Shown here piece after piece: positions 18,587 through 38,565 of a stretch of DNA of 64,000 bases; the stretch's first letter is position 1; every line of letters starts with the position of its first letter. The stretch is taken from positions 95,560 to 159,559 of the forward strand of contig QPMI01000090.1 of the NCBI GenBank assembly GCA_004431415.1, in the 5' to 3' direction. The translations under genes and the position numbers were made by a program. Under the pieces are notes generated by a model. That model had not been told where the DNA came from, ran no database searches, and was given only the letters and a program-made list of their open reading frames with translations. Source of the DNA: Cyanophora paradoxa CCMP329. Taxonomy: Eukaryota; Plantae; Glaucophyta.

Positions 18587-19950
18587 TCAGAAAGCCGAAC
18601 CTGCGGCCGCGCCAGTCAGGGGGTGGCGGCGGGGCGAGGGGGTACCCGCGAACTTCTCGAGCGTGACGCGCGCGCGCTCGTTGATGTGCTTGAAGCGGTC
18701 GGGGCCCTGCGAGGGTTCAGGTAGCGCTGAGCTGCGCCGCGCACGCGCGCGGGCCGGGGCCGGGGCGCGGGGCGGGGCGCACGAGCTGGATGCCGCCGAA
18801 CCAGCGCGTGACGACGACCAGCGCGTCCCGCACGTCCATCAGCTGCGCGCGCCGCCCCCGCGCTCGCCGGGGGTACGCGGGCGTTCGGGGGGTACGGGGC
18901 GGCGGACGACGAGGAGGGCGAGGAGCTTGTCGCCGGCGCCCGTCTCCCCGTCGTCGTCCCGCGCCTCCTCCCACTGGCTCTCCCCCACCCTGAACCGCCT
19001 GCCCCCGCCCCCGGCCCCCGTTCGCCCGCAGGCGCCGGCGCGCGAAGCAAGGCGATGGCTAACGGCCGCGCACCAGGCGGCGATGTTGTGCGTTGCGTTC
19101 GCGATCTTCTTGTCCTCGTACAGCTTCGCGATGACAGCCCGCACCTGACCCCGCGGCCGAGTCAGCGGGAGCGGAGGGCGGCCCGCTGCGCGGCCGGCGC
19201 GCCTCGTCGTCGGAGTGCACAGCGGCGACGTGCGCGACGAACTGAGCGCCGCGTGAGCTGCGCGCGCGGCCGGAGGCGCGCGCGGCGGTGTCGGACCTTC
19301 GACTTGCGGTCGGTGATCGGGTCTCCTGTGTGGATCGGGGGGCATGGGCACCGCGGCGGCTCGGGCTGCGGCTTCGGCGGCTGCTGCCTCGCTTCCTCGC
19401 ACTCTGACCTGCCGGCGCTGCCCTGGCTGGCCGTGCTGCCGCTCCGGTCCGGCGGGCTCTTCTGCTGCAGCTCCAGCCTCGCGTCCTCGTACAGCCGCGT
19501 TGCGTTCTCGCGCACCCTGCCCTACGCGTCACCCGCAATGGCCGCGGAAGCGCGACGAGCTTACCACTCAATCTGCTGAAAGAGATGCCCCTCGCCATTT
19601 GCCTCGATCGAGATAGATTGCAGGTTCTCGCATATCTTTTATCGATCGTGCCCGCGTAAGCGAGGACCGGAGCGCGACGCGCGCTCGCGCGCGCTGACCT
19701 CCTGCAGGTCCCGCTCCCGCACCCACGAGTTCTTGTAGCGCGAGACGACGAGCGGCGCTTCCGCCGGGTAAGCGGTCGGCAGGATGAACTGCAGCGCGAG
19801 AGGCTCCGGCGGGGGCCAGCCGGCGACGCCACTTGCGTCCGGCCTGACGTTGATCTCAAACGAAGGCGGCTCGCCGGCAGCGCTCGACCCGCGCTTGAAG
19901 TCTTCGCCGTAAATGGCCTCGAGCGCCACGAACTCGTCCTCCAGGCTCAT
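18587..19950 (-). CDS. IMPACT: IMPACT/YIH1 protein (RWD + UPF0029 ancient domain)
   Basis: RWD domain (EDEFVALEAIYG...LPTAYPAEAP) followed by PIHTGDPITDRKSKFVAH, KKIANATHNIAAWR, DDDGETGAGDKLL and VVVTRWFGGIQLGPDRFKHIN. Confidence 0.95.
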
Positions 19951-20015
19951 GGCGCGACTAGGCGATTCACCTATACCCGGCTATTCGTCAAACCTGTGTG
20001 TACCCAGCCAAGAAG
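19951..20015. promoter_or_regulatory. Putative bidirectional promoter between IMPACT and S1/P1 nuclease
   Basis: Only 65 bp separate the divergent ATGs. Confidence 0.55.
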
Positions 20016-22331
20016 ATGCGGCCTGCTGAGAAAGCAGCGCTGCTGTTGCTGCTGGGCCTGTGCGCAAGCCCTGCGTTCGCGTGGTGGGCTGTCGGACACC
20101 AGGTGGTGGCGGAGGTCGCGTTTCGCAACATTAAACAGTCCAGCGCCGATCGCATCGCGGAGCTTATAAAGGGTGCGACATTTTTTCCCCTTAGTCTCGT
20201 CCTTTCTCGTGTACGCGCGCCGCGCCGCCGACCAAGCGCGCGCAGTCTTTACGGACGAGTACCCGACCTTTACGTCGATATCCGACCTTGCTACATGGCC
20301 AGATGACATTAAGGAGCACGGTAGGGAAGTTCCAAAGCCTGCAGCTGCGGCGGCCCTGCTGACCGTCGGCAAGGGGTCGGCGTGTATGATGCCTGGCATT
20401 TCATCGACATCCCCATCGCCCCGGACCCCAGCTACGCCCCGAATTGCCCGCCTCAGTCCCAGAACGTCGTCTGGAGCACGAACTCGGCACGCCCTTTCCC
20501 GTGCCCTCTCCCGGCAGCAAGCCGCGCCCTCTCACGCACGCGCGCCCCCTCTGCACCAGGCGCTCTCCATCTTGAAGAGCGCCCGGGCGACGAAGTTTGA
20601 GAAGGCCACGTTCCTCAAGTGCGCCTGCGCCGGCCCCGCCCGCCCGCTGCGCGCTGCCCGCGCCGAGCTGAACGTTCCCCCTCGGCAGCTTCCTCATCCA
20701 CTTCGTGGGTGCGCGCCTCCGCCGCCGCCTCGCGTGGGGCGCTCGTGCGGCTCACCGGCGCGGGCTCGCAGGCGACTCGCACCAGCCGCTCCACTGCTCC
20801 ACCCTCTACAGCGCCGTGCGCCTGCAGCCCGGCGCTACGCAATCCGCGCGGCTCCGCGCTGACACTGCACCCGGCCGCAGGACTTTCCGGATGGGGTACG
20901 CAAATTCCGAGGGTCCTCGCGATCCGCCAACCCGCCCCACAGGACCGCGGCGGCAACAAGTTCATCCTCCCAAGTGCGTCTGGCCCACGCGCCGGTACCC
21001 GTGTCCTGCTCACTCACTCCTGCAGGCGGCAACCTGCACGCGCTCTGGGACGGCGGATTCGGCCTCTTTGTCGGGTAAGGGGCGCGGGTCCCGCCGCCGG
21101 CCAGTGCCCGACCAGTAACCCGTACCCCCGCAGGCAGGCGAGGCACCCGACGGACGAGTCGACGAAGGAGCGCCTCGCGAAGATCGCCGACGACGTGACG
21201 GCCATGTACCCCCCGTCCTCCCTCGCCGCGGAGCTCGCCGTGAAGGTGGGTCCTCTCTCGTCTACCGGGGGGTGCGGGAGCGGGACTGGGCGGGGCAGGA
21301 CGCGATGGAGTGGGCGAGGGGCAGCGCGGGGGTCGGGGAGTGGGCGCGGGCGGCGCTGCCCGAGGGCCGGCGCCCCTCGGGGGCCTACCTCAACGCCTCG
21401 CTCTCCGCCGTGCGGCGGCAGGCGGCCCTTGCCGGCTACCGCCTCGCCGCCGCCCTCGACGAGGCCTTCGCCGCCGAGGCCCTCGCCGTTGCGGCCGACG
21501 CGGCGGCCCGGGCGCTGCTGCGGCCCTGGCCCGAGGCGGCCGGCTCGGAGGCGGGGCGCCGGGCCCGGGCCTTCGCGGTGGGGCGCGGCCTCTCCGTCGC
21601 CGCCTTCTTCACCCTCCTCGCCGGCCTCGCCTCCTTCCGCTTCCTCCTCCGCCGCCGCCGCGCCCGCGCCCGGCGGCGGCCCGCCCGACGGCGCCCGCCC
21701 CGCACGCGCGGCCGCCCGCCCCCGCGCACCTCCTGGCGGCCCCTCGCGGAGCCGGCCGGCGCGCCCGCAACAGGAGCAGGAGCAGCAGCAGCAGCAGCAG
21801 CACAGGCACAGGACGAGGGCGGCGGCGGCGGCGGCGGGGCGGCAGCCGAGCAGTAGGGCGGTCCGCAGGCGCCGCCGAATCGAACCGAACGGGCCGAACG
21901 GGCGCTCTCGAAGCTCCGCTAAGGCGGGGGTCTAGCTATAGCGCGGGGGGGCAGGCCGATGGCGAGCGGGGTCCGGGGGCGGGCTCTGACGGGGCGCTCC
22001 GGGCAGGACTTCCAGGGGTGGGCCGACGGCGTCCACAAGGTCGCCCAGGACGTGCGCCGCCCCGTCAACCGAGCCGCCTGCGCGCCCCGCGGGTCCTGTC
22101 CCCTGACGACCCCCCCCGCAGGTGGTGTACAACGGGATCCGGGAGGGGGAGAAGCCGTCGCAGGGGTACCTGGACACGGGGATCCGCACGGTGAAGCGGC
22201 AGATGGCGCTCGCGGGGTACCGCCTCGCCTCGCTCCTGGACCAGGCCCTCGCCAACGCCGCGCCCTTGTCCGCCCACCCCCGCCGCGACGCCGCCGTCCC
22301 GCCCCTCCGCGGCCACGCCGGCGACGTCTAG
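20016..22331 (+). CDS. S1/P1 nuclease with signal peptide and two alternative 3' exon sets (21299-21856 with TM anchor; 22007-22051 + 22122-22331 soluble)
   Basis: Signal peptide ending AFA, then mature WWAVGHQVVA; WPDDIK; WHFID; FLIHFVGDSHQPLH; DRGGN; NLHALWD (zinc-ligand motifs). The terminal helix motif QxALAGYRLAxxLD occurs twice, once in each alternative 3' exon set. Confidence 0.93.
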
Positions 22332-24651: not shown

Positions 24652-27600
24652 TCACCGGGGGGCTGGTTGCATGAGGGGGGCGTACGCGTGCGCGGGCGGG
24701 GCGAGCGGAGCAGAGATGCCGTACGCGGCGGCGACGCCCGGAGCGAGGGGCGGGAGGGGCCCCGGGCTCTGCCCGTGGACGGGGCTGAACCCGAGGGGGT
24801 TGAAGGAGGCGAGCGGGTGGGCGCCGGGGGGCGAGGCGGCGGCCGCCTGCTGCCTCCTGAGCCGCTCGAGCCGCTCCGCCTCGGGCTCCGCCAGCGGCGA
24901 CGCCGAGGGCCCTGGCAGCGCCCCCTCAGCGAGCCGGCCCGAGCGCGAGGCGCGGGGCGGGGCGGGGCGGGGGCGGACCGCGGGGGCGGCCGAGCTCGGC
25001 GTGGATGGCGGCGAGGGAGGCCTGCAGCTCGGCGACGCGCGCCGCCGACCCGTTCATCTGCACCCGCAGCACCTCGTCCTCCAGCTCCCGCAGCCGCTCC
25101 TCCCCCACGCCTCCCCTGCACCGCCCCGCCCGCCCGCCTCGCCCCCGGCCGGCGGCGGCGGGCGGGGCGGGGCGGGGCGCGGGGCGGGGCGCACGGGGCG
25201 GGGCGCCTGCGGAGCTCGTCGGCCTCAGCGGCGAGGGCGCGCAGCTCCTCCTCCAGCCGCTCCTCGCGCCCCGCCGCCTCCTCGATCGCCCCGTCCAGCG
25301 CCCGCATCTGCTGCACCAGGTACTCCGCCGCCCGCTTCCGCGACGACGACTGCGCCCGCCCCGCGTCACGCCGGCGCCACGGGGGCGGCAGAGAGGAGCA
25401 GGAGCAGCGGAGCTCGCCTGGCCGCTCGCGTACTCCGCGACGAGGCCCGTGAGCTGCGAACGCGGGGGGTGCGAGCGCGGGTGAGGGCGGCGGGGGGAGG
25501 GGACGGCGGGCGCAAGCAACGCTCGCCTCGGCGATGCGGCGGTCGCGCTCCTCGAGGAGGGCCCCGAAGTGCCGCCCCTGCCTCGCCACCTGCCGCACCG
25601 CCCGGCCGCGTGAGAGGGCGGGGGAGGGCGGGGCGGGGGTCGGGGCGGGGCGCCTGCTCGCGGGCGCGGAGGGCCTCGTCGGCGCGGGCGCGGTTCTCCT
25701 GCAGCAGGGAGGACCAGCGGTAGCGCCCCTCCCGCTCCCGCCTCTCCAGCTCCTCGATGTGCCGCTGCCCCCGCCTCAGCGCCCCGACGAGACGGCTCGC
25801 GGGCGGGGCGCGTGCGCACGGCCATGAGCTCGCGCTCGCGGCCGCGCTCGGTGAGGAAGGCGTGCAGCTCGCTGGCGTCCCGACGCCCGCGCGCCCGGCG
25901 GCGGCGGCCGCTCCTCGCGGGCGCGCGCGAGCTCGCGGTCCCGCAGGGCGAGCTCCTGCCGCAGGAACGCCACCGAGCGCTCCGCCTCCGCCAGCGACCG
26001 CGCCCAGTCCCCCGGCGGCGTCGCGCCCTGCGAGCCGCCCGCCGCCGAGGCCGCCGCCCCGCAGGGGCGGCCTGGGCCTGGGCGGCCGCGGCGTCGGCGC
26101 GGGCGCTGCGGTGCGGTCAGGGCGGCAGGCGGGGCGGGGCGGGGCGGGGCGGGCCGGAGGGCCTCGAAGGCGCGGGCGATCTCGTCGAAGTGGCGCTCGG
26201 GAGGAGCCGCTCGACGCGCAGCAGCTCCGCAGCCACCGCCCCCGCCCGCTCCTGCAGCGGCCGCCCCATGATCTCCTCGCACGTCGGCGCCGAGGGGTCC
26301 CCGCCCGGCGGCCCCGCCGGCTGCTGCCCCGTCACCCGCGCTACCAGCGCGTCCGCCACGTGCCGCAGCTTCGCCGTCCTCAGCCGCAGCTGCACCGCCC
26401 CGTCCGCCACGGGGAAGAGCGCCATGTCCACCTCCCGCGGCCCGTGCCGCCCCGCCCCGGCCCCCGCCGCTGCCGAGGAGGGGCCGGCCGGGGGCGCGGG
26501 GGCGGCCGCGGGGAGCTCCTCGAGCAGGCGCGCGGCGGCGGCGGCCTGCCGGTGGTCCGTCGCCGCGTGCCTCGCCGCCTCGGCCGTGGTGTCGCCGGGG
26601 CCCACGCCGGCCCCTCCTCCCCGGGCCTCCGCGGCGTGATCCCCGAGTGCCCCGCCTCGGGCCCCGCCGCCCCCGCCGCCCCGCCGGACGTCGTGCGCCT
26701 GAGCGAGCTGCCCAGGCGGTCGTTCTTGCGCGCCGCGTTCTCGTCCTCGATCGCCTGCGCCCGCCCCGCCGGCGTCAGGCCCCCCCCGCGCCCCGCGCGG
26801 GAGGCTACCGACCTTCAGCGTCGCCTCCATGCGGTCCAGGTCCTCGCGCGCGACGCGCCCCGCGCCCGCGCCCGCGCCCGCGCCCGAGGGCCCGCCCCGC
26901 CGCCGCCCCCGGCGCTGCTCCCGCTCGCCGTGGGGTCCCGCCGGAGGGAGGTCGAGGGCCCCGCCCCGCCGGCCGCCCGCTCCGCGCCCCTGGGCGAGAA
27001 GGCCCCGCCTTCCCCCGCGGGGGCCTTCCCGGCGCCGGAGGCGGGGATGTCGATCCGCACGGGGGCTGACGCGTGCCGCCGGAAGGAGCCCTCCAGCGCC
27101 CCGCCGCTCGCCGCCGCCGACTTTGCGATCGACTCCTCCAGCGACGCTTTCTCCGGGGCTGGCACCAATGTCGAGCTGTTCTTCGGGAAGGGCGGGTACT
27201 GCACGCCCTGTGCGGCCGCGTCTGGAAGAGATCCGGGAAAGAGGAGGGAAAAGGAAACGGGGGGCGCACGGGGCGCGAGCTTGCGCCCTTCTCGGGCGAG
27301 CCGCTGGTGGCGGGGCGCGTCTTGCGGGGCGAGCGGTTCGCGGACGGCTCGGCGCCCGCGCGCCGCGGGGAGGTTTGAGGGGCCTGCAAGTTGGTCTGCG
27401 AGCGCCGGACGAGTGACGGCCCACTGGGTCCCGGATCCGGCTTCTGCCTCGAGGTGAGATTCGCCTTCGACACCGGCGCCGGAGTGACCTGCCGCGGCGG
27501 CGCGTCAGGGCGCGCCAGTAGCTAGGCGGGCCGCCGCACTGCCGGGGGCTTCTTCGTGTCGGGCTTGGAGAGCATCGCGTTAGCCTTCTTCGTCGGGGAT

Positions 27601-28191
27601 GCGAAGTCCTTCAGCGGCTTGTCCATCGCGCTGAAGGCGCCCAGGTCACCAGGCTGCGCCACGCGTTCGGTCGTTGGTCGTCGCCCGAGGGCGGCGGCGG
27701 GAGGCCCGCACGAGGTTCCCCGAGCCTCGCACAGCAACGTCCATGTCCGCCGCATAGAAGAAACGGTACCAGTCGACGTCTGCGAGCGCGCCGCCAACGT
27801 TCGAAATTCAAGCGTACGCTTAGCTGCGGACGCCCCGCACCGTAGCCAAAGCGAATAATGTCTCCGGATTCAAGCGGGATCGATCCCTGCTTGATGTGCT
27901 GCTCGTTCACCCAGGTGCCGTTCGTGCTGCCGACATCGTAGAGCACAGCACCGTCCCGCGGCAAGTGGCCCGTGCGGGGAATGGCAAACTCCACGATCGC
28001 ATGACGGCTAGATATAGTCTTCGGCTGCGCGCGGCAGGGCTCGCCGCGGCTCCGGGCAGCTGGGAAAGGGGTTCGGCGGCGCGCACCTCGAGACAGATGT
28101 CGTTGTCCGGTGCGCGACCTATCGAGCATCTCGCAGCGCAGAGCTCGTACCGGTACTCGGGCCCGATGAGGAGCCCGAGCGCCGTCTCCAT
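24652..28191 (-). CDS. FHA-domain protein with long coiled-coil C-terminal region
   Basis: N-terminal FHA motifs SIGRAPDNDICL, ISSRHA, DVGSTNGTWVN and LESGDIIRFG. Downstream exons are E/R/A/L-rich and heptad-like (RSLAEAERSVAFLRQELALRDRELARAR; LRELEDEVLRVQM). The 3' model is blurred by apparent homopolymer frameshifts. Confidence 0.8.
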
Positions 28192-28301
28192 TAGGGGTAC
28201 GCGACTGAAGATTGGGGTACGACTCTCCACTGGCCATTTCGTTCTCTGCGACGTCGGGTTGGCGTTACAAGTTGTAGAATCGTTGCGAACCTGTTGGGAA
28301 G
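28192..28301. promoter_or_regulatory. Putative bidirectional promoter between FHA gene and RlpA-LysM gene
   Basis: 110 bp between the divergent ATGs, lower GC than the flanking exons. Confidence 0.5.
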
Positions 28302-29276
28302 ATGCCACAGCAGCGGGTCTGCCGCAGCAACTGCGCGTCGAAGATGTGGCAAGGCTTGCAGGGGCAGCGTACTTTCTCCGGTGAGCCCTACTCGGACGGG
28401 GGCTTCACAGCGGCGCACCGGACACATGCGATGGGAACAAAGCGTACGTAGAGCGCGTAGGCGATCGGCACTCCTGCGTGCGCTGATCGGCATCCGGAAA
28501 TCTGCAGTGAAGGTGACAAACCTGTGGAATCAGCGCTCAGTGGTCGTCAAGGTGAATGACAGGGGTCCATTTGGATCGGCGGTGAGCGTTGATTCAAATC
28601 TCACTTGCTGCTGCGCGATCTTATCTTTGTCTAGGCGCGGATCATCGACCTGAGCGGGGCGGCGGCGCGGGCCATCGGCCTGACGACGGGGAGCGTGCCC
28701 GTTTCGATTACCGTGGCAGCGCCGGCGCCAGCTAAGAGCGGCTCCCCCGCGCGGCCGGCCTCAGCTGGCGCGCAATCAGCCTCGTCGAAGGCCGCCCCTG
28801 GTGCCAGTGCTTCGAAGGGCGCCCCGGCAGCCCCGGCGGCGCCGGCAGCGGGCAAGCACGTCGTGCGGGCCGGCGACTCGCTGTGGACGATCGCGGCGCA
28901 GCACAAGACGACTGTGGCGCAGCTGCAGAAGCTCAACCCGGGCGTGACCACGGCGCTCACCATCGGCCAGTCCGTCGCCGTCGGGCCCGCCGCGCCCGCC
29001 GCCGCTCCCCCCGCCGCGACCCCTGCAGCGGCCCGCAAGCCGAGCGCCGCGCCCGCCCCCGCGCGGCCCGCGACCGCCCCGCCGCGGCCGGCGACCGCCC
29101 CGCCCCGGCCGGCGGCGGCGCCGGCGGCCTCCGGGGCGCACAAGTACACGATCCGGCCGGGAGACTGCCTGTGGACGATCGCGGGGCGGCACAAGACGAC
29201 GGTGGCGGAGCTGCGGAAGGCGAACCCGGGCCTCACCAACGACCTCACCGTCGGCAACGCCATCAACGTCAAGTGA
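28302..29276 (+). CDS. rlpA: RlpA-like double-psi beta-barrel (septal lytic transglycosylase family) fused to two LysM domains
   Basis: Three exons give ...[28 protein letters not shown]|[24 protein letters not shown]|[17 protein letters not shown] Pro/Ala linker leads to Lys[28 protein letters not shown] and Lys[28 protein letters not shown]. Confidence 0.92.
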
Positions 29277-29581
29277 GCCCGGCGCCCTCCGCCCTCCGCC
29301 CCCTCCAGCTTTTTCCCTTCGAAATTCCCCAGCCGTTCCATTCGATACTCGTCGCGCCACCTCCCCGCGCGCACAAGCAATCCATATCACACTTCTTTGC
29401 ATGGGTAGATGTAGGCTGGAGTCTAGCGGTCACTGGCGTAGGCCCTTTTGCAGTTGATTGTCGGAGTTGTGTACTTCGTTAGGTTAGAGGTATTCGCTAC
29501 GCATTGCAGGTCACTTTGAATAGCATTTGTAATTTATGATACACTGGAGAGGGAAGCCGGCGCGGCCTGGGCGTCCTAGTG

Positions 29582-32500
29582 CTAGTCGGACTCGCGGTCT
29601 GAGCCGTAGTCGGAGCCGTCGCCCGAGCCGGCCGCCGCTGCAGCGCCCGTGTACGGCTCGAAGGGCAGCGGGCCGTGCTCGGCGATGCTGAACAGAAGCG
29701 TCAGGCGGAGCTCGATCGCCAGGAGGCTCGAGGGGAGGGGCGCGGGGGGCACGGCACCTGTCGAAGAGCCACTTGTGGCGGACGACAGGGGGCGCCTTGC
29801 GGCCGCCGGCGCCGGCTGCGGGGGCGAGCTCCGGGTCCTCGCAGAGGACCACGCTCGCCTTGCCCGCGTCCTTCTCCAGCTGCCCGCCGCCCGGCCCCGT
29901 GAGCCCGGGCGCGCCCCTGCGGCGGATCCGGGCCGCTCTCCCCCGCGCACCGTGGCGCCGGCGGCGGCGATGAGGGCGTGCAGGAGGGGCGCCTGCAGCT
30001 GGAGCGGCGGCTCGCCCGCCGTCGCGATGCGGTACCCCTTCAGGATGCGGCGGCCCTCCTCCGGGGCCGGCACGTTGAAGGCGGTGTTCGCGTAGGGCTC
30101 GACGGGGAGCCAGCGGCGCGCCTCGGCCGAGTCCAGCACCCACTCGTGCCGCACGATGGCCGCGCCCCGCGCGATGCCGTAGAGGACCTGCCGGCTAAGT
30201 CGGCCCCAGCCGCACGGGGGGCGCGGCGGGCCCGGACCTTGTACGTGCGCATGGGGCCGGCGGTGACGACGTGGGTGATGGAGGGCAGGGGCGCCTTCCT
30301 GTGCGAGATGCGCACCCCGCCGACCGCCCGCGCCGCCTCCACGATCTGCCGGCCCGGCCGCGTCAGGCCGGGGGAGCAAAGCGCGGGCCCCGGGAGGGTG
30401 GCCGCCGCTCGCCTGCCTGCGGGCGCCCTCGTCGGCCCCAGAGATGCAGATCACGACTCTGGCGGCCGAGCCCGACGACTCCGCCCCCCCCGCCGCCTTG
30501 GTCGCCCTCCCCTTCGCCGCTGGCCGCTTCGGCGGCGCCGGCGCCGGGCTCTCCGGCTCAGCAGCCGCCGCCCCCTCCGCGCCCGGGGCGTCGCGGGGCG
30601 GCGGCGGCCGGCGGGGCCGCGGGCGGGGTCGCGGGGCGGCGGCCTGGCGGGCGGCGCGGCCGGCGGCGATGGCGGCGGCGATGGAGGCCTGGAGGGCCTC
30701 GGAGAGGGCGAGGCGGCCGGCCGCCCCTCGCCCTCGCCCTCGGCCCCGCCCTCGGCCTCGCCTTCGCCCAGTCGGGGGCCTGGGACGCCTCGAGCTGGCC
30801 CGTGAGGGCGCGGATCTCCCCCGCGTCCCCGGCCGCCAGCGCCCGCGTCAGCGCCCCAGCAGCGCCCGCAGCCGCCCCTCCGCCTCCTCCCGCCGCCGCC
30901 GCTCCGCCTTCAGCTCCCGCCGCAGCGCCGACGGCCGCCCCCCTTGCGAGGCGCCCGCCGCCCCCGCCCCCGCCTCCTCCGCCTCGGGGGCCCCGGGGAG
31001 GCTGTCGGGGGGCATCACGAGGGCCCGCACGGGGCTCATCGGCGTCGCCTCGACGTCCGCCTCCTGCGCCCCCGCCGGCGTCGCCTTCGCCTTCTCGAGG
31101 GCGGAGGGGCCCGCGCCGGGCCCGGCGTGTTCCGCGCGTCCCCCGCGTTCTCGTCCTGCGCTGCCGCCGGTGTTGCCGTCGGCCGCGCCGGCGTCGCCGC
31201 GGGCCGCGCCGGCGTCTCCGCGGGCCGCGCCGGCGTCGCGGCGGGCCGCAGCGGGGCCGTCGTGCGCCGCCGCTTGCGCCGGTCCTCCTCCGCCCGCCGC
31301 TCCTCGCGCCGTCGCGCCGCCTCGCGCCGCACCAGCGCCGCCCGCATCGCTGCGGCCCGTGAGCGGGGCGCGCCGGCGGGCGGGGCGGCGCGGGGCGGGC
31401 GGACCGGCCTGGAGGACGACGATGGCCTCCCAGCGGCGGTCTGCCTCGCAGCAGGCGATCCACATGCGCACGTTGCGCTGCACGACGGCCGCCGCCCGCC
31501 CCCGCGCCTCCCCGAGGCGCTTCTCCAGCCACCGCACCGGCACCTCCTTCAGGAACACCCGCGACTTGCCCACCTGGCGGGGGGCGATCAGGCGCCGGCG
31601 GGCTCCAACCCTTGCAGGTCGCGGGGCGCGCGCCTGCCAGGCGGGGAGGAGCCGCTTCTGGGCGCCGAGGTGGGCGGGGCCCTCGGCGGGCCGGGGCATG
31701 CCCTGCGCCTCGAGGCAGCCCAGCGCGCGCTGGACGAGGGGCGCCGCGGGGGCGCCCGCGGCGGAGGCGACGTCCCGCGGCAGCACCGGCCGGTACCTGC
31801 GGGGGCGCGCGTGAGCGGGTACGGCGGCGGCGCAAGCGAGCGGGGGGCACCGGCGGAGGAAGTCGGGGAAGGGGAGGGAGGCGGCGTAGGCGGCGGAGGC
31901 GACCTGGACGGCCTCCACGAGGCCCGAGCAGCGCATCTGCTGCAGCAGCAGCGCCGCCTGCACCGCCGGCGCCGCCCCGTCCGCGGCCGCCTCGGGGGCC
32001 GGCTTCATGCAGCGGATGAAGTGCGCGTCGCTGGCGGCGATGGTCCGCAGCAGCGAGTCGAGCTGTCCCTTGAACTGGGCGAAGACGGAGAGGGCGCGGG
32101 CCTTTGAGGGCCCCGGGCGGGCGGCGGCCCCGGCGGCGGCGGCGGCGGAGGGGGGCGGGCGGGTGGAGGAGAGCTGGGCGAGGCGGGCGGCGGCGCGGAG
32201 GAGCGGGGAGCGGGAGGAGGCGAGGAGGGCGAGGAGCTCGGGGGAGACGGCGTCCCGGTTCCTCGCCACGAACCCCGCCGTGTCGTACGTCACCTGCGCC
32301 CGGTCGGACCCGCGCCGCTGCGGTCTGCGGGGGGTCGGGGGCGCGGCGCGGCGCGCACGTCGCCGGCGTAGTGGCGGAGGGTGAAGGCCCCCGGGCTGAA
32401 CTTGGCCCGCGCGTAGCTCGGGTGCTCCCCGAAGGCCGCGTGCAGCTTCTCCGCCAGCGCCTTGTCGCTCCCGCCTGCCCCGCCCCCGCCGTCAACTCAG

Positions 32501-34661
32501 CGCTCGGGCGCGGCTCGGCCCAATTCCGCGGCGGGGAGCTCGCGCGCACCCGGGAGGCCGCACTGCTCCTCGAGGAGGGCGACGAGGCCGGCGCCGGGGC
32601 GCTCGAGGAGCTCGCCGCAGGCCCTCGCGGCGCCCGGCGGGGGCGTCGCCTCCCACTCGATCCCCTCGCGCACGTACTCGAGCTGCTGCCCCGCGATCGC
32701 CGCCTCGTTGAAGTGCTGCTGCAGCTTCTCGTTCGCGTAGTTGATGCACAGCTGCTCGAACCCGTTCCCCTGCACCTGCCCCGGCCCCCGCTCGCTCCCG
32801 GGCCGAGGGGGACTCAGGGGCGGAAGGCGGACCTCCATGTTCTCGAACCCGAAGATGTCGAGGATGCCGATGAGGGGCGCCCCCGCCGCGCCCTCGGCCC
32901 CCGCCGCGCCCTCGGCCCCCGCCCACTCGTCGTCGTCCGCGCCGCCGGCGGCGGCCCCGGCCCGGCGGGGGCGAGGGCGGCGTTGACGCGGGCGGCAAGG
33001 GAGCGGAAGAGCCGGCGTAGAGGGCCATGCAGAGCGAGTCCCGCGCCTGCCCCGCCTCCCGCGGCGACAGCGTCCGCGCGAACGACGACCCGCCCGACCC
33101 GCCCGCCGTCGCCCGCCGCACCGTCAGCGCCTCCACCAGCGCCCCCCGCCCGCCCGGCAGCGCCAGCAGCTCCGCCGCCGCCCCGAGCTCCCGCAGGCAC
33201 TCCTCGGGGAGCGCGCAGGCGTCCCCGTGGCCCGACCCGGACTCGAAGCGGGCGTTGCCGAGGCGGAGGATGGCGGCGAGGGCCCGCAGCGCCTCCCGGC
33301 GCCCCTCCTCTCGCACCCCGAAGGCCTCCAGGGCGGCCATCGTGCGGGCGAAGCCGGCGGCGTCGGCGGCGCGCTCGGCGGGCGGGCAGGCCTCGTGTGT
33401 GGCGCCGGCGAGGAGGCGGTAGGCGGCGGGGTCGTCGGACTCGAGGGAGAGCTCGGCGAGGAGGGCCGGGCCGGCGCCGGCGAGCAGCTGGTAGAAGACG
33501 TGGAAGCTCCGCTCCCCGGGCGCGTGCCCCGCTACCCGGCACTTCTCCAGCAGGTCTGGCCGGGGCCGCCGTGAGGCCCGCCCCGCGTGGAGCGCCGGGG
33601 CGGGGGCGGGCGGAACGCACAGGTGTCGATGTGGGCCCCCGCGATGGTGCGGCCGGTCGGGTCGAACCAGATCTGGGCGACGGTCGAGGGGGCGGGCGGG
33701 GGGGAGGGAGGGCCCCCGGCGGGGCGCACCTTGACGAACTTGCCGAAGCGTGAGGAGTTGGCGTTGCGGCACGTCCGCGCGTTTCCGAAGGCCTCCAGGA
33801 TCGGGTTCGACGCCAGCACCCGCTCCTGCCACCCCCCGCCCCGGCTCGACGCGCAGGCGGGGTGAACGATGGCGGAACGGTCACCTGGACGCTGCGGCCG
33901 GCGCACGAGGCGGCCGCGCGGCCGCTCGCCCGGCTCGTGAGGTACTCCAGGATGTATTTCTGCGGGCGCTGTGAGTGGCATGGGATTGATTCGAGCAGAA
34001 GAAGCGAGCTCGCCGTCGTCTCTGTCTTGCCCGCGCCGCTGTCGCCACTGCGCGAGGCAGCTGAGAGCGCGCGGCGCGGCTGGCGGCGCGGCGGCGCGGA
34101 GGACCTGATCAAGATGGACTGGGGCTTCTTGTCTGCGTGCGAGCTCAGCGGCGGCCGGCGGGCCCCAGGGTGCGCTCGCGCACCGCGGAGCATGCGGCGG
34201 TAGGCGCGCTCGGCGAGGAAGTAGACGTGCGGGACGACCTCGTCGTCGGCCGCCTCCGCGACCGCCTCGCGCGCCTCCTGGCAGTAGATGTCCAGCTGCC
34301 GGTACGGGTTGACGGCGACCAGGATCTCCCCCGCGAACGTGTAGATCTCGCCGGCGTCGAAGCGCGCGGTGATCCGGTCCAGCAGCTCCGCCTCGTTCTT
34401 GTGGACGCAGGAGCGCAGGCTGCGGAGCTCGTTTAGCGCCCCCGCCTCGCTACAGGCGTCGGGGCGGCCTGCGGAAACGCACTCGGGCGCGAGCGCCTCG
34501 GGGCACGGGTCGCGCTCCAGTGTGCGCTCCTTCGGGCCGAGCGCCCTACACGAGCCGTCTTCTAGCCGGACCATACCGTTCGGCATCCGAGTCGCCTGCA
34601 CATAGCGGCCCTCGCGGGTGAACAGCCAGATCGGAGCGGGTGGCTCCGCGGGCCCCGCCAT
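29582..34661 (-). CDS. Unconventional myosin: motor domain + IQ motifs + low-complexity/helical tail + C-terminal tandem BRCT
   Basis: Motor motifs [116 protein letters not shown] and [10 protein letters not shown]-like VVQRNVRMW and VLQAAMRAAL. BRCT motifs [22 protein letters not shown]...WVLDS and [11 protein letters not shown]. The link between the tail and the BRCTs crosses about 3-4 single-base frameshifts. Confidence 0.85.
31165..31250 (-). repeat. 21-nt coding tandem repeat (PAxTPAR)n in the myosin tail
   Basis: [28 protein letters not shown]. Confidence 0.8.
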
Positions 34662-34807
34662 CTCTAAGCTGCCCGATCGACTCCGGCGAGCCAGCTAAAT
34701 CTATTTCTCGCGCTTCTACCCGCGGCTGTGACTGCGGGAGGAGATGGTGAACGGGACACCGAGGAATCCGTTGCCAATTTACGATACCCCGGCAGGATGG
34801 CTCCTCG
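34662..34807. promoter_or_regulatory. Putative bidirectional promoter between myosin-BRCT and CHUP1-like genes
   Basis: 146 bp between the divergent ATGs. Confidence 0.55.
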
Positions 34808-37417
34808 ATGAAGCGGTCGCGGGGCCAAGGGATGGTGAGTCGGCGCCCTTCTGTGCGACGCTCTGCACGCGTTGACTCTGCGCAGGAACCCCTCGCGGAG
34901 CGAGACCTGAATGCGCCGCCCGCACACGGCACCGCGAAGCAGCAGCCCCCTGTAAGGCGTTACAAGATTGGAGAGAGCCGGCTGCATGCCGCACGCTTGC
35001 GGGCTAGGACGCGGCGGGCGGCAGGCCAGGCGGCTGCAGCCGACCCGAGCACCCCGCAGCGCTCGTCCGGCCTTCCCGTGAGCGACGATGCAGCGGAAAC
35101 GCCGGGAACGGAGGCAAACGAGGTCGAGGCGAACGCCAGCCCCGCACAAGCTCCAGCTCCCGCACAAGCACTGAGCAGCAGCCCTGCTCAGGCGCCCACG
35201 CAGGCCACCAGCGCGCGTAGATCCAAAGCGAACGCAGAGCCCGAGCCCGAGCTTGTGCAGCAGAAGACGGAGGCGTGCAGAGAGCTGCCAGCGGGCGGGC
35301 CGCAGCCCTCGCCAGGGCGGACGCAGCCGGATCGTAGGCGGCACGCCATTCCACGGCGGCGTACGGGTGCCTCGGTGCGCTCGGAAGAATCCACGCCCGC
35401 TACTGGCGCTCAGACCCCTCGCGTCGCTCGGGCCGGCCTGGCTCCCGCGGAGCCAGGGCAGCATGCGTCGGATGCCGCGGCGGCTTCGTCCGCCGCGCCG
35501 CCCCCGCCGGCGTCAGGCTGCGAAGGCGCGGCGGTGCCGGTGGCCCTTGCCTCGCCTGCACGCCGTCCTCCAACCCTGCCATCCGGCGGGCCCGCGTCGA
35601 TTGCCCAGTCCCCTGCCCCCGCCTCCCAGCCCGCTACCCCCGCCAGCGGCCGGGCGCCTCCGCCCCCTGCCCGCCGCGCCGCGCCTCCCCCCGTTCCACC
35701 TCCGCCCCCCTCAGCATCCTCCGTCCCCGTCCCCGGCCCCTCCGCCTTCCCTCCCCCTCCTCCGCCTCCGCCTCCGCCGGCCCCGCTCGTCTCCTCCTCG
35801 TCCAACCCGCCACGTGTCCCCCCGCCCCTCATACCTTCTCTCCGGTCCCCCGCAGCGCCCTCTCGAACGACGGGCGAGACCGCTCGACCTCCCCCTCCCC
35901 CGCCGCCGTGTCCGGCCGCCCCGCCTGCCCCCGCCCCCTCCTCCGGCGGCCGCCGCCGGCGCTGGCCCTCCCTGCCCCACCGCCGCCGCCGGGCGCTTCT
36001 CGGCCTGCCGTCGCCGCGTTCCCGCCCCCGCCGCCCCCGCCCGGCTGCCCTGGCCCAGGCCGCCGCCGCTACCTCCGGTGCCCCTCCGCCACCCCACCGC
36101 ACGGCGCTGCCCCACTAGCCCTCCCGGAGTCCCGCCGCCGCCGCCGCCTCGGGCGCCCCGTGCGTCGCCCCTCCCCCAGCCAAGGTCCGCTCCGCCACCC
36201 GTCCACCGGCTCCTTCTCCACTCAAGCCGCGCCGCGCAGTCCGCCGTTCGCCGGCCCTCGTCGCCCTCATGCAGCGCCTCATGCGGGCGAAGCGCGAGGG
36301 CGGCGCCCCGGCCGCCTCGCCGGCCGTGCTGGCCGGCGCGGCGGGGGCGGGGCGGCGGCCCCCGCCGGGCCTTCGCGGCCCAGAAGGCGGCCGTGATTGA
36401 GGAGCTCAAGCGCAGGCGCGCCAGCGCCCGAACTCAGCGGGGGTGCGCCGGCTGAGCGGGGCGGGGCGCGCAGGTCGAAGCACCTGGCGCGCGTGCAGCG
36501 GGAGGCGGAGGAGCACGGCCCGCGGCTGCGCGCCCTCGCCGCCGCGGTCGCCGCCTTCTCCTGCCGCGACGAGGCGGCCCTGCTCGCCTTCCACAGGTCC
36601 GCCCCGCCCCCTCCTGCGGGGCGCGGGGCCGCCGGCGACGCCTCCCGCGCAGGGAGGTGGAGGCGGCGCTGGCGCCGCTGGAGGACGAGGCGCGGACGGC
36701 CGCCCTCTGCTGCCCCGAGGCGCGTGGCCCGCCCAGAAGCTCGCCGACATCCGCGGCGCCGCCTCCCGGCGAGCCCCCGCACGCCCAGCGCCCCTGCTTC
36801 GATGCCGCCGCTGACGCGGGGGCAGGACGCTCGGGCTGCGGGAGCTCATCGCCCGCGTCGAGGCCTGGAGCGCCGAGGCGGGGGGCCCCGCGGGGGCCCG
36901 CCCTCCCCCGCCGACGAGCAGGTCGCTGCCGCGGCGCGGGCGCGGCGGGGAGGGCCTCTGAGCGGGGCGGGCGGGGCAGGTGGCGCGGGCGGCGGCGTGC
37001 TTCGACGCGGCGAAGCGGCAGCTCGAGGCCGCGAGCGCTCCCGCGACGAGGAGCTCAGGCGGTGCGCCTCTCCGGCCGGCCCCGGCGCCGGCGTGCCCCG
37101 GGGCCGGCGGCTGAGGGGGGCGGGCGGGCAGGTTCAAGGCGAGCGGGCTCCACTTCGACGCGGGGCTCTTCACGCGGGCCAAGCACGCCGCCATCCGCCC
37201 CGCTGAGGCGGCCGTGCGGGCGGCCGTGGCCGAGGGGCGGCGGGCGCGCGAGGCGGCGGCGACGGCGGCGCGGCGGAAGGCGGCGGGGGCGACGCTCTTC
37301 AGGGCCCTCGCGCTGGCGCAGCGGGCGTACGTGCTCGCCGGCGGGGCCGACGGGCGGCTCGAGGCGGCCGTCTCCGAGCTCGCCGAGCTCCTCGGCGACG
37401 CGCAGGCCTGGCTCTAG
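34808..37417 (+). CDS. CHUP1/IPGA1-like protein: disordered N-terminus, polyproline (FH1-like) region, CHUP1 C-terminal domain
   Basis: VIEELKRRSKHLARVQREAEEHG..LRALAAAV...DEAALLAFHREVEAALAPLEDE...WPAQKLADIRGAA, SRDEELRRFKASGLHFD and LFRALALAQRAYVLAGGAD match, in order, the CHUP1-C motifs as I recall them (IxEIxNRS, DLLAFV..LDEELxxLVDE, WPExKxDALREAA, RDxxxxRYKEFGIPVD, RFAFRVHQFAGGFD). Multiple poly-Pro tracts lie at ~35480-36200. Confidence 0.82.
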
Positions 37418-37592: not shown

Positions 37593-38565
37593 TTAGAGGT
37601 CGATGGCGGCCTCGTCGACGGCGGAGGCGTCGTGCTCCTCGTCGGCCTCGACGAAGGCGCCGGTCTCGAAGTGGGCCGCGAAGACGTCGTCGCCGAGCGC
37701 CGCCGCCTCGAGCTCCAGCAGCGACTGCTCGTCCGCGTCCACGCGGTTCGACGGGATCGCGTCCGAGCGCCCGCACGCCCCCGCCGCCTTGGCGAAGAGC
37801 TCCGTCAGCTGCACGCCCCGCCCGCGTCAGTCGCCGCCACACGGACGCCGGCTGGGGCGGGAGCGGCCGGACCCCCTTCGACTTGGCGATGATGTCGTCG
37901 CAGAAGCCTACGGCGCGGGCGGATCAGACGGGGGGCCGCTAGTGAGCTCTCCGGCGCAGCGCGGGCGAGCGGCTTCGCAGGGTTCCGGAAGCGGGCACGG
38001 GTAGCTCACCGCGGTCCTCCTTCTCGGTCTTGCAGTCCTGGAGTTTCTGCGGAAAACACGTAAGGGCCAGCTGCACCACGGCGTGGGGCCGGCAAGGCAG
38101 CTCACAGAGACGAGGTCGTCGGGAATCGTCTGGCAGAACTGCTCGAACGCCTGCTGCATCTCTGCGCGGTGACACGTGCCATGAGCGCAAAGGAGCAAAA
38201 GAAAAGCCGGTGGCGGCGGGGGCCGGCAGGCGGGGGCCGGCGGACCGTGGAACTCGCGGGCATTGCAGCGGTTCCCGTTCTGGTCGGCGACCTCCAACGG
38301 CAGGTCCATCTTGAAAACGTAGCTCTGGCCGGCCGGCAGGAGCGCCCCGACCGCGTCCGGGTAGACGCGGGCGAAGCAACTGACACGGGCGCCGTTAGAC
38401 CCCGCACTGCGAGCTGGGGGCGGAGCAGAAGCTAGCGCACTTCGGAATATGGAAGGCGTTGTCCTCGCCGTCGAAGCGCTTCACAGCGCGGCCGAGGTCG
38501 CGGTTGGTGGTCATCTGGCACTCCACACCATCCATCCCGCACTGGAGCATCGGCACGCCCGACAT
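37593..38565 (-). CDS. Hypothetical protein with acidic C-terminus
   Basis: Phase-consistent GT-AG spliced exons run from MSGVPMLQCG... through ...EMQQAFEQFCQTIPDDLVS|KLQDCKTEKEDR... to ...VDEAAIDL*. No recognisable domain. Confidence 0.6.

Follow-up and report, generated by a model that had tools for sequence, protein, structure and literature searches.

Do a myosin gene and the CHUP1-like gene lying head-to-head with it form a working pair, and does this myosin really end in two BRCT domains? These questions are raised by positions 29582-37417 of a 64,000-nucleotide stretch of the Cyanophora paradoxa CCMP329 genome (GenBank assembly GCA_004431415.1, contig QPMI01000090.1; the whole stretch is hereafter called the window). 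An earlier note, made from the sequence alone, had proposed a co-expressed module consisting of an actin track-builder and a motor for phospho-marked cargo. Here, we favour on balance another reading, in which two independent genes lie across a short divergent gap and an orphan myosin has gained a microcephalin-type tandem BRCT tail for cargo, making it a motor that would be gated by kinases. Judged from its predicted domains, a myosin with a tandem BRCT tail is a new myosin architecture.

The myosin gene runs from ATG 34661 (minus strand) to a stop at 29582-29584 and the CHUP1-like gene from ATG 34808 (plus strand) to a stop at 37415-37417, the two ATGs being 146 bp apart, as the earlier note had given them. 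Read contigs were compared at a likeness of 90 with 6,000 letters of the window (29560-35559), part of the 5' region of the CHUP1-like gene included; most joints and loose ends were match noise in GC-rich sequence and were disregarded. An independent short-read contig (X8 record 31, 2,129 nt, 33384-35512) covers both 5' ends with no mismatch or gap; this perfect agreement shows that the head-to-head layout did not arise in assembly. The contigs of runs X1, X2 and X4 are presumed to be RNA, a label supported by pieces that end at predicted exon edges. Since these pieces respect the exon edges and one of them skips 31795-31848, as spliced RNA would, both genes are transcribed. Thus, the myosin and CHUP1-like genes (tig00000367; the latter is g24484) are real, spliced and expressed. 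The C. paradoxa genome, a PacBio assembly, holds 25,831 densely packed genes with intergenic distances averaging 770 bp and many short introns (PMC6704402). In the assembly, both genes carry several single-base frameshifts each, and their spliced models were compared with databases exon by exon, not as joined proteins.

The myosin gene and its probable tandem BRCT tail

By exon-phase bookkeeping, the coding sequence of the myosin gene comprises 4,050 nt over 18 exons, and six extra bases are required for an open frame. Its features are as follows.

29582..34661, minus strand: myosin-BRCT gene, 18 exons and 17 introns of 50-75 nt, ~1,350 aa allowing six single-base assembly deletions
34483..34661, minus strand: exon 1, N-terminal extension, SH3-like by position only; RNA contig 34500-34667
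31523..34419, minus strand: motor and converter, with NPY, P-loop GDSGAGKT, switch I, switch II DIFGFE, relay helix and SH1 helix; Ser at the TEDS site
31315..31500, minus strand: two IQ motifs 23 residues apart, straight after the converter via a short helix; read support for splice acceptor 31349 (X4 record 18)
31261..31330, minus strand: ER/K-type charged helix, 69% charged, ending in the cluster RRKRRR; frame read-supported to 31212
31165..31249, minus strand: 21-nt tandem repeat in four copies, encoding TPAR three times and TPAA
30633..30883, minus strand: coiled-coil-like tail segment with three assembly deletions, a linker coming after it; apparent stop at 30848-30850, very probably an artefact
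29951..30460, minus strand: BRCT repeat 1 and the beginning of repeat 2; S-G of the pocket at ~30442 (ISG at 30445), R-T-Y-K at 30249
29585..29879, minus strand: remainder of BRCT repeat 2, with the WLFD motif, then a short acidic C-terminus; both exon edges present in RNA piece 29758-29879

The stop at 30848-30850 would separate the BRCT repeats from the motor. Two RNA contigs (X1 record 2, X4 record 17), which come from two studies, run across this stop with three gaps and no mismatches and have three letters more than the window has there, and three frame switches visible by eye in 30633-30883 match the three extra contig bases. The stop is therefore very probably an assembly error. Pieces of spliced RNA lie on either side of it, and DNA contigs covering 30027-30557 in the BRCT part are identical to the window. 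In addition, the AT content of the stretch from the IQ motifs to the BRCT repeats is 15% with a 50-nt maximum of 32%, whereas six out of six gene ends or gaps measured reach at least 46%; thus, no intergenic signature is present there. On this evidence, the myosin-BRCT fusion, which the earlier note had read from the letters, is very probably real, and we hold this with high confidence. In keeping with it, the published annotation has a single gene number (g24483) between the LysM gene g24482 and g24484. As the BRCT piece gave no self-match in a search of 1.84 billion representatives, we infer that the published myosin model stops before the BRCT repeats.

The identity of the tail was examined with the BRCT exon-3 piece, whose top match in the PDB was microcephalin (E 2.4e-4), followed by XRCC1, BRCA1 and MDC1; repeats 1 and 2 of the pair also match each other (E 4e-4). 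The best PDB and database matches are of the microcephalin type. Five weak matches were found among the 1.84 billion representatives, all with BRCT and none with a myosin head, for example a microcephalin-like protein of Saprolegnia. Two loci of the nearest BRCT relatives were examined and contained no exon matching myosin or CHUP1, so the idea that these genes might be neighbours of the relatives was dropped; a metagenome scan for BRCT relatives found nothing. The pair shares with microcephalin (MCPH1), BRCA1, BARD1 and MDC1 the two repeats, the same linker, the W-x-x-D motifs and the pocket residues. In contrast with MCPH1, it is fused to a motor and the N-terminal BRCT is absent, and one pocket position is Lys here and in BARD1 where MCPH1 has Asn. 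An orthologue of microcephalin can be ruled out, the N-terminus being a myosin motor and not a BRCT.

That the minus-strand gene encodes a myosin, as first proposed, is borne out by five stop-free pieces that match the myosin head in Pfam (PF00063, E 6e-24 to 2e-14). All catalytic motifs of the motor are readable (P-loop, switch I, switch II, relay and SH1 helices), whereas exon 1 gave no match in a Pfam search. Pieces of spliced RNA were found at 34419, 31795-31848, 31349 and 29951/29879/29758. Two frameshifts in the motor, near 33020 and 32960, are predicted assembly deletions that did not show up in the reads. The largest motor exon had myosin VI as its top PDB match (E 2e-14). Membership in class VI was nevertheless dropped, since insert-2, which in myosin VI lies between the converter and the first IQ motif, is not present. 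Because the converter leads directly into the IQ motifs, the protein is probably a conventional, plus-end motor, with a lever made of two IQ motifs and the charged helix. A myosin survey describes the myosins of C. paradoxa in its text as lineage-specific orphans (Kollmar and Muhlhausen 2017, PMC5583752). The present protein shares full motor motifs, the IQ lever and the charged helix with them and with its nearest solved match, myosin VI; it differs from myosin VI in lacking insert-2 and in a tail that ends in a tandem BRCT.

Two side observations concern the motor region. An 18-nt perfect repeat of 2.5 copies (32879-32923) encodes an inserted Gly/Ala/Glu loop immediately ahead of switch II. 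Contigs at 33904 and 34081 differ from the window by a 2-nt insertion and a 2-nt deletion; they probably derive from a paralogous myosin, as the DNA contig of the locus itself is ungapped there.

Possible phosphopeptide reading and regulation of the tail

In tandem BRCTs, S/T-G and T-x-K form the phosphate-binding pocket, and the BRCT pairs of BRCA1, MDC1 and MCPH1 bind peptides of the phosphoserine (pSer)-x-x-F/Y type. Repeat 1 of the myosin tail contains both elements, S-G on strand 1 and R-T-Y-K (T-x-K) in helix 2, the S-G alignment to one compared protein (P0006) being weak (E 8.9). The S-G, R, T and K residues are all kept, with ~35-55% surrounding identity to the closest relatives. By analogy with BRCA1, MDC1 and MCPH1, the pair may bind a pSer-x-x-F/Y-type peptide, often a C-terminal one, through this pocket.

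Phosphorylation might also act on the motor itself. A hydroxyl residue at the TEDS site of class I and VI myosins is associated with phospho-regulation, and the Ser at this position, a feature common to myosins I and VI and the present protein, suggests that motor activity may be gated by its phosphorylation.

The earlier note had also listed basic clusters and full sites for cyclin-dependent kinases (CDK) in both proteins. All of them are present (RRKRRR, MKRSR, TPAR three times and TPQR), and most do not exceed chance. The myosin tail has four full CDK sites against 0.48 expected, which becomes two against 0.38 (P=0.05) when the repeat is counted once; minimal S/T-P sites after the repeat is collapsed number six against 2.2 expected (P=0.014). 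The three TPAR motifs belong to a single 21-nt tandem repeat and were dropped as three independent sites. Similarly, RRKRRR was dropped as independent evidence for nuclear import, being the end of the ER/K helix, although it could still serve as a signal. In the CHUP1-like protein, full CDK sites number three against 1.5 expected (P=0.18) with TPQR at chance level, S/T-P sites are fewer than expected, and the KRSR cluster has P=0.05. As far as such motifs go, they lend mild support to a phospho-regulated myosin tail and none to joint control of the two genes.

It is conceivable, and rather improbable in our judgement, that the fusion is real and the BRCT pair serves for interaction or autoinhibition in a generic way, as one of many shuffled tails in an expanded myosin set, with no role in DNA damage or the cell cycle. 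The description of C. paradoxa myosins as lineage-specific orphans in the survey text (PMC5583752) and the lack of an orthologue in our searches would fit such a module, whereas the retention of every pocket residue at such low surrounding identity and the enrichment of S/T-P in the tail speak for a phosphopeptide reader.

The CHUC-type neighbour and the divergent gap

The gene on the other side of the gap was assigned to a published model through its exon 2, which retrieves one protein, tig00000367_g24484.t1 (P0001, EukProt Cyanophora paradoxa). The gap and the features of this gene are given below.

34662..34807, no strand: divergent gap, AT content 40%; RNA contigs reach to near 34667 on the myosin side and to ~34789 on the CHUP1-like side, contig ends being unable to show true starts
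34808..37417, plus strand: CHUC-type gene g24484, eight exons, ~735 aa; first intron 34835-34885 supported by RNA
34886..35650, plus strand: disordered Pro/Ala/Ser-rich N-terminal region without a hydrophobic anchor; ungapped RNA contig 34885-35533
35650..36150, plus strand: FH1-like polyproline region with Pro runs of 5, 10, 7, 5 and 7; predicted assembly indels in C runs
36240..37414, plus strand: CHUP1/IPGA1 C-terminal domain, with Gln (codon 37319) at the position of F958; R820 region beside an indel near 36690-36712

The polyproline segment and CHUP1-type C-terminal domain had both been recognized in the earlier note. The C-terminal part has an Atlas score of 0.94, with 207 features common with CHUP1/IPGAL1_C clusters, and the CHUP1 structure 8WAG is its top PDB match, a weak one (E 0.14-0.71) in three collinear blocks. 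The genome paper gives an uncharacterised plant protein as the top match of g24484 (E 6.5e-17; PMC6704402). Other searches were less informative: Pfam gave no match for pieces of the protein with a profile set that was searched without PF26700, a word-index search for relatives of the C-terminal domain returned only the protein itself, and Atlas noted nothing on the last exon alone. AlphaFold, run with a single sequence on the published and partly misframed C-terminal model, gave a predicted template-modelling score (pTM) of 0.26, and three fold searches returned generic helices.

Proteins with the CHUP1 C-terminal domain and without the N-terminal half (CHUC type) are known from Coccomyxa, Micromonas, Guillardia and land plants, and their function was called unresolved (Kong et al., 10.1101/2020.01.14.905984). 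Based on its predicted domains, the neighbour is a CHUC-type member of the CHUP1/IPGA1 domain family. It differs from the known CHUC proteins in its long disordered N-terminus and in the Gln at F958, and no glaucophyte member is named by Kong et al. No myosin-BRCT protein was found in databases or in literature searches, which left most subscription papers outside their scope, so that absence is unproven. The text and supplements of two myosin surveys, as distinct from their figures, do not mention BRCT.

With Arabidopsis CHUP1, the protein shares an FH1-like polyproline region followed by a domain, FH2-like in CHUP1, that is collinear with 8WAG. In contrast with it, the maximum hydrophobicity over the first 60 aa (KD19) is -0.44, which argues against a plastid-envelope anchor, and there is no sign of an N-terminal coiled coil, the region before the C-terminal domain being 26% Pro, a point of composition only. 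CHUP1 requires R820 (actin contact) and F958 (dimerisation) for actin polymerisation. In 8WAG these residues correspond to chain positions 110 and 248, by an offset of 710 that assumes a 5-residue tag. F958 is replaced by Gln, an assignment anchored on the AGG-x-D motif in a weak alignment block beyond the read-covered part, and position 110 (R820) aligns to Ala with an adjoining Arg, beside the indel and also within a weak alignment. CHUP1 proper was rejected as an identity because of the absent anchor and the Gln. It should be noted that IPGA1, which carries the same C-terminal domain, binds microtubules (PMC6793458). Thus, actin nucleation is plausible from the polyproline and yet unsafe to assume, as F958 is Gln, R820 is uncertain and IPGA1 binds microtubules. 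The neighbour would be a soluble CHUC-type protein, probably a profilin-fed regulator of actin or of the cortical cytoskeleton, with a job of its own.

With regard to gene models, an intron near 35333-35455 in the published g24484 was dropped because RNA runs ungapped through 34886-35533, and the published g24484.t1 is misframed over much of its middle. An upstream ATG frame of four codons (34798-34812) overlaps the CHUP1-like start codon inside the RNA-supported 5' region. In both genes, GC content rises from ~62% at the 5' ends to >80% inside, and the assembly deletions cluster in these interiors; GC donors occur in at least 5 of the 24 introns modelled in 29582-37417 (34013, 31633, 30412, 36416 and 36769).

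A scan of intron strands revealed several divergent junctions within the window, in line with the caveat in the earlier note that tight divergent pairs are usual here. Three other pairs, with starts judged by eye, are closer than 146 bp (64-79 bp).

19645-20303, head-to-head, ATG gap 65 bp: RWD-domain gene (ATG 19950, minus strand) and S1/P1 nuclease gene (ATG 20016, plus strand)
27400-29276, head-to-head, ATG gap ~64 bp: FHA-domain gene and RlpA/DPBB-LysM-LysM gene g24482
37593-38565 (minus strand) and from 38645 (plus strand), head-to-head, ATG gap 79 bp: gene with acidic C-terminus and protein-kinase-like gene

Two of the three, RWD/S1-P1 nuclease and FHA/RlpA-LysM, join evidently unrelated genes; the tested pieces of the third pair had no match in Pfam. 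The 146-bp gap is therefore ordinary in this window. The FHA-domain gene is another phosphopeptide reader near the myosin-BRCT gene, and g24482, which the genome paper gives as a peptidoglycan endopeptidase (PMC6704402), is tail-to-tail with it.

Therefore, the linkage of the two genes is probably incidental, a result of tight genome packing. A module, in which one bidirectional promoter jointly drives a CHUC actin nucleator and a BRCT myosin so that a filament builder and a carrier of phospho-cargo act under cell-cycle control, appears improbable to us. It draws on the fact that both genes are cytoskeletal, lie head-to-head and appear in the same RNA runs, where their contig depth is similarly low (a measure that cannot rank genes), on the rarity of this specific pairing by chance, and on the FH1-like polyproline ahead of the C-terminal domain, as in CHUP1. 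Against it stand the closer neighbouring pairs, of which two join unrelated genes, the ~0.25-2.4 actin-themed neighbours expected by chance under assumed family sizes, the CDK sites of the CHUP1-like protein at chance level, the Gln at F958 with R820 uncertain, and the unresolved function of CHUC proteins (Kong et al.) together with the microtubule binding of IPGA1. A shared promoter driven by E2F was dropped, as the 146-bp gap contains no E2F-like site. The module of track-builder and motor is thus unsupported, the motifs invoked for it being mostly driven by repeats or composition and the plastid anchor being absent. We keep a small probability for some functional link between the genes because one functionally related adjacent pair has been reported in this genome (PMC6704402).

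Cargo, remaining alternatives and meaning

On the reading of two independent genes, the motor would load only onto cargo marked by a kinase and then move or tether it on actin. Binding, compartment and cargo are deduced here from what was observed, namely the domains, motifs, expression and near-continuous frame. Damage-marked, gamma-H2AX-like chromatin is our leading guess for the cargo, because of the microcephalin-type reader, the possible import signal and the precedent of a nuclear myosin; it is tentative and falls somewhat short of even chances. Mitotic or basal-body phosphoproteins are possible and less likely, followed by other cytoplasmic cargo. The precedent is nuclear myosin 1, which gamma-H2AX signalling brings to chromatin (PMC5041470). 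As in that system, a fused protein would have a motor engaged by a gamma-H2AX-type phospho-signal; the difference is that motor and phospho-readers are separate proteins there, whereas the reader is predicted to be built in here.

Several points weigh against the preferred reading. No single contig spans the motor and the BRCT repeats; 30884-31211, where one further inserted base is needed, and two splice joints of BRCT repeat 1 lie outside the displayed contigs; and the contig comparison gives the three extra bases without their exact positions. The BRCT match is modest (E 2.4e-4), with Pfam below its cut-off, and as no orthologue of myosin-BRCT was found, the pocket shows no conservation signal. 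Finally, the chance of a neighbouring myosin-nucleator pair is 0.5-5% per genome under assumed family sizes, a rarity that we discounted because cases of this kind will turn up when many themes are scanned.

Two further alternatives are still less probable than those considered above. In the first, for which we see little chance, the myosin reads a gamma-H2AX-like or mitotic mark with its own BRCT and is co-transcribed from one 146-bp promoter with a track-laying CHUC nucleator; if true, this would be a hard-wired two-gene system that moves phospho-marked chromatin or division structures, and it would give CHUC proteins a first function. The least probable is that nothing is fused, a short-tailed myosin ending near 31036 or 30848 and being followed by a distinct, microcephalin-like BRCT gene, for stops do exist in the assembly, the published model seemingly lacks the BRCT piece, which has no self-match among representatives, and its nearest relatives are stand-alone microcephalin-like proteins, but RNA contigs 3 nt longer than the window cross the second stop, there is neither space nor an AT-rich signal for a terminator and promoter between IQ and BRCT, the downstream frame looks coding (GC content at third codon positions 1.0, block 31077) already upstream of the sole candidate ATG at 31039, and the tail in the assembly frame ends in an implausible poly-Arg run.

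The myosin-BRCT has probably escaped current annotations, the gene being truncated ahead of the BRCT repeats by assembly deletions. With the CHUC gene, the CHUP1 family gains a glaucophyte member, in keeping with the view that the C-terminal module is older than plastid-anchored CHUP1, and the Gln at F958 makes this protein a natural test of actin nucleation as the ancestral activity. A motor whose phospho-reader is built in would condense into one protein the recruitment of nuclear myosins that damage triggers in animals.

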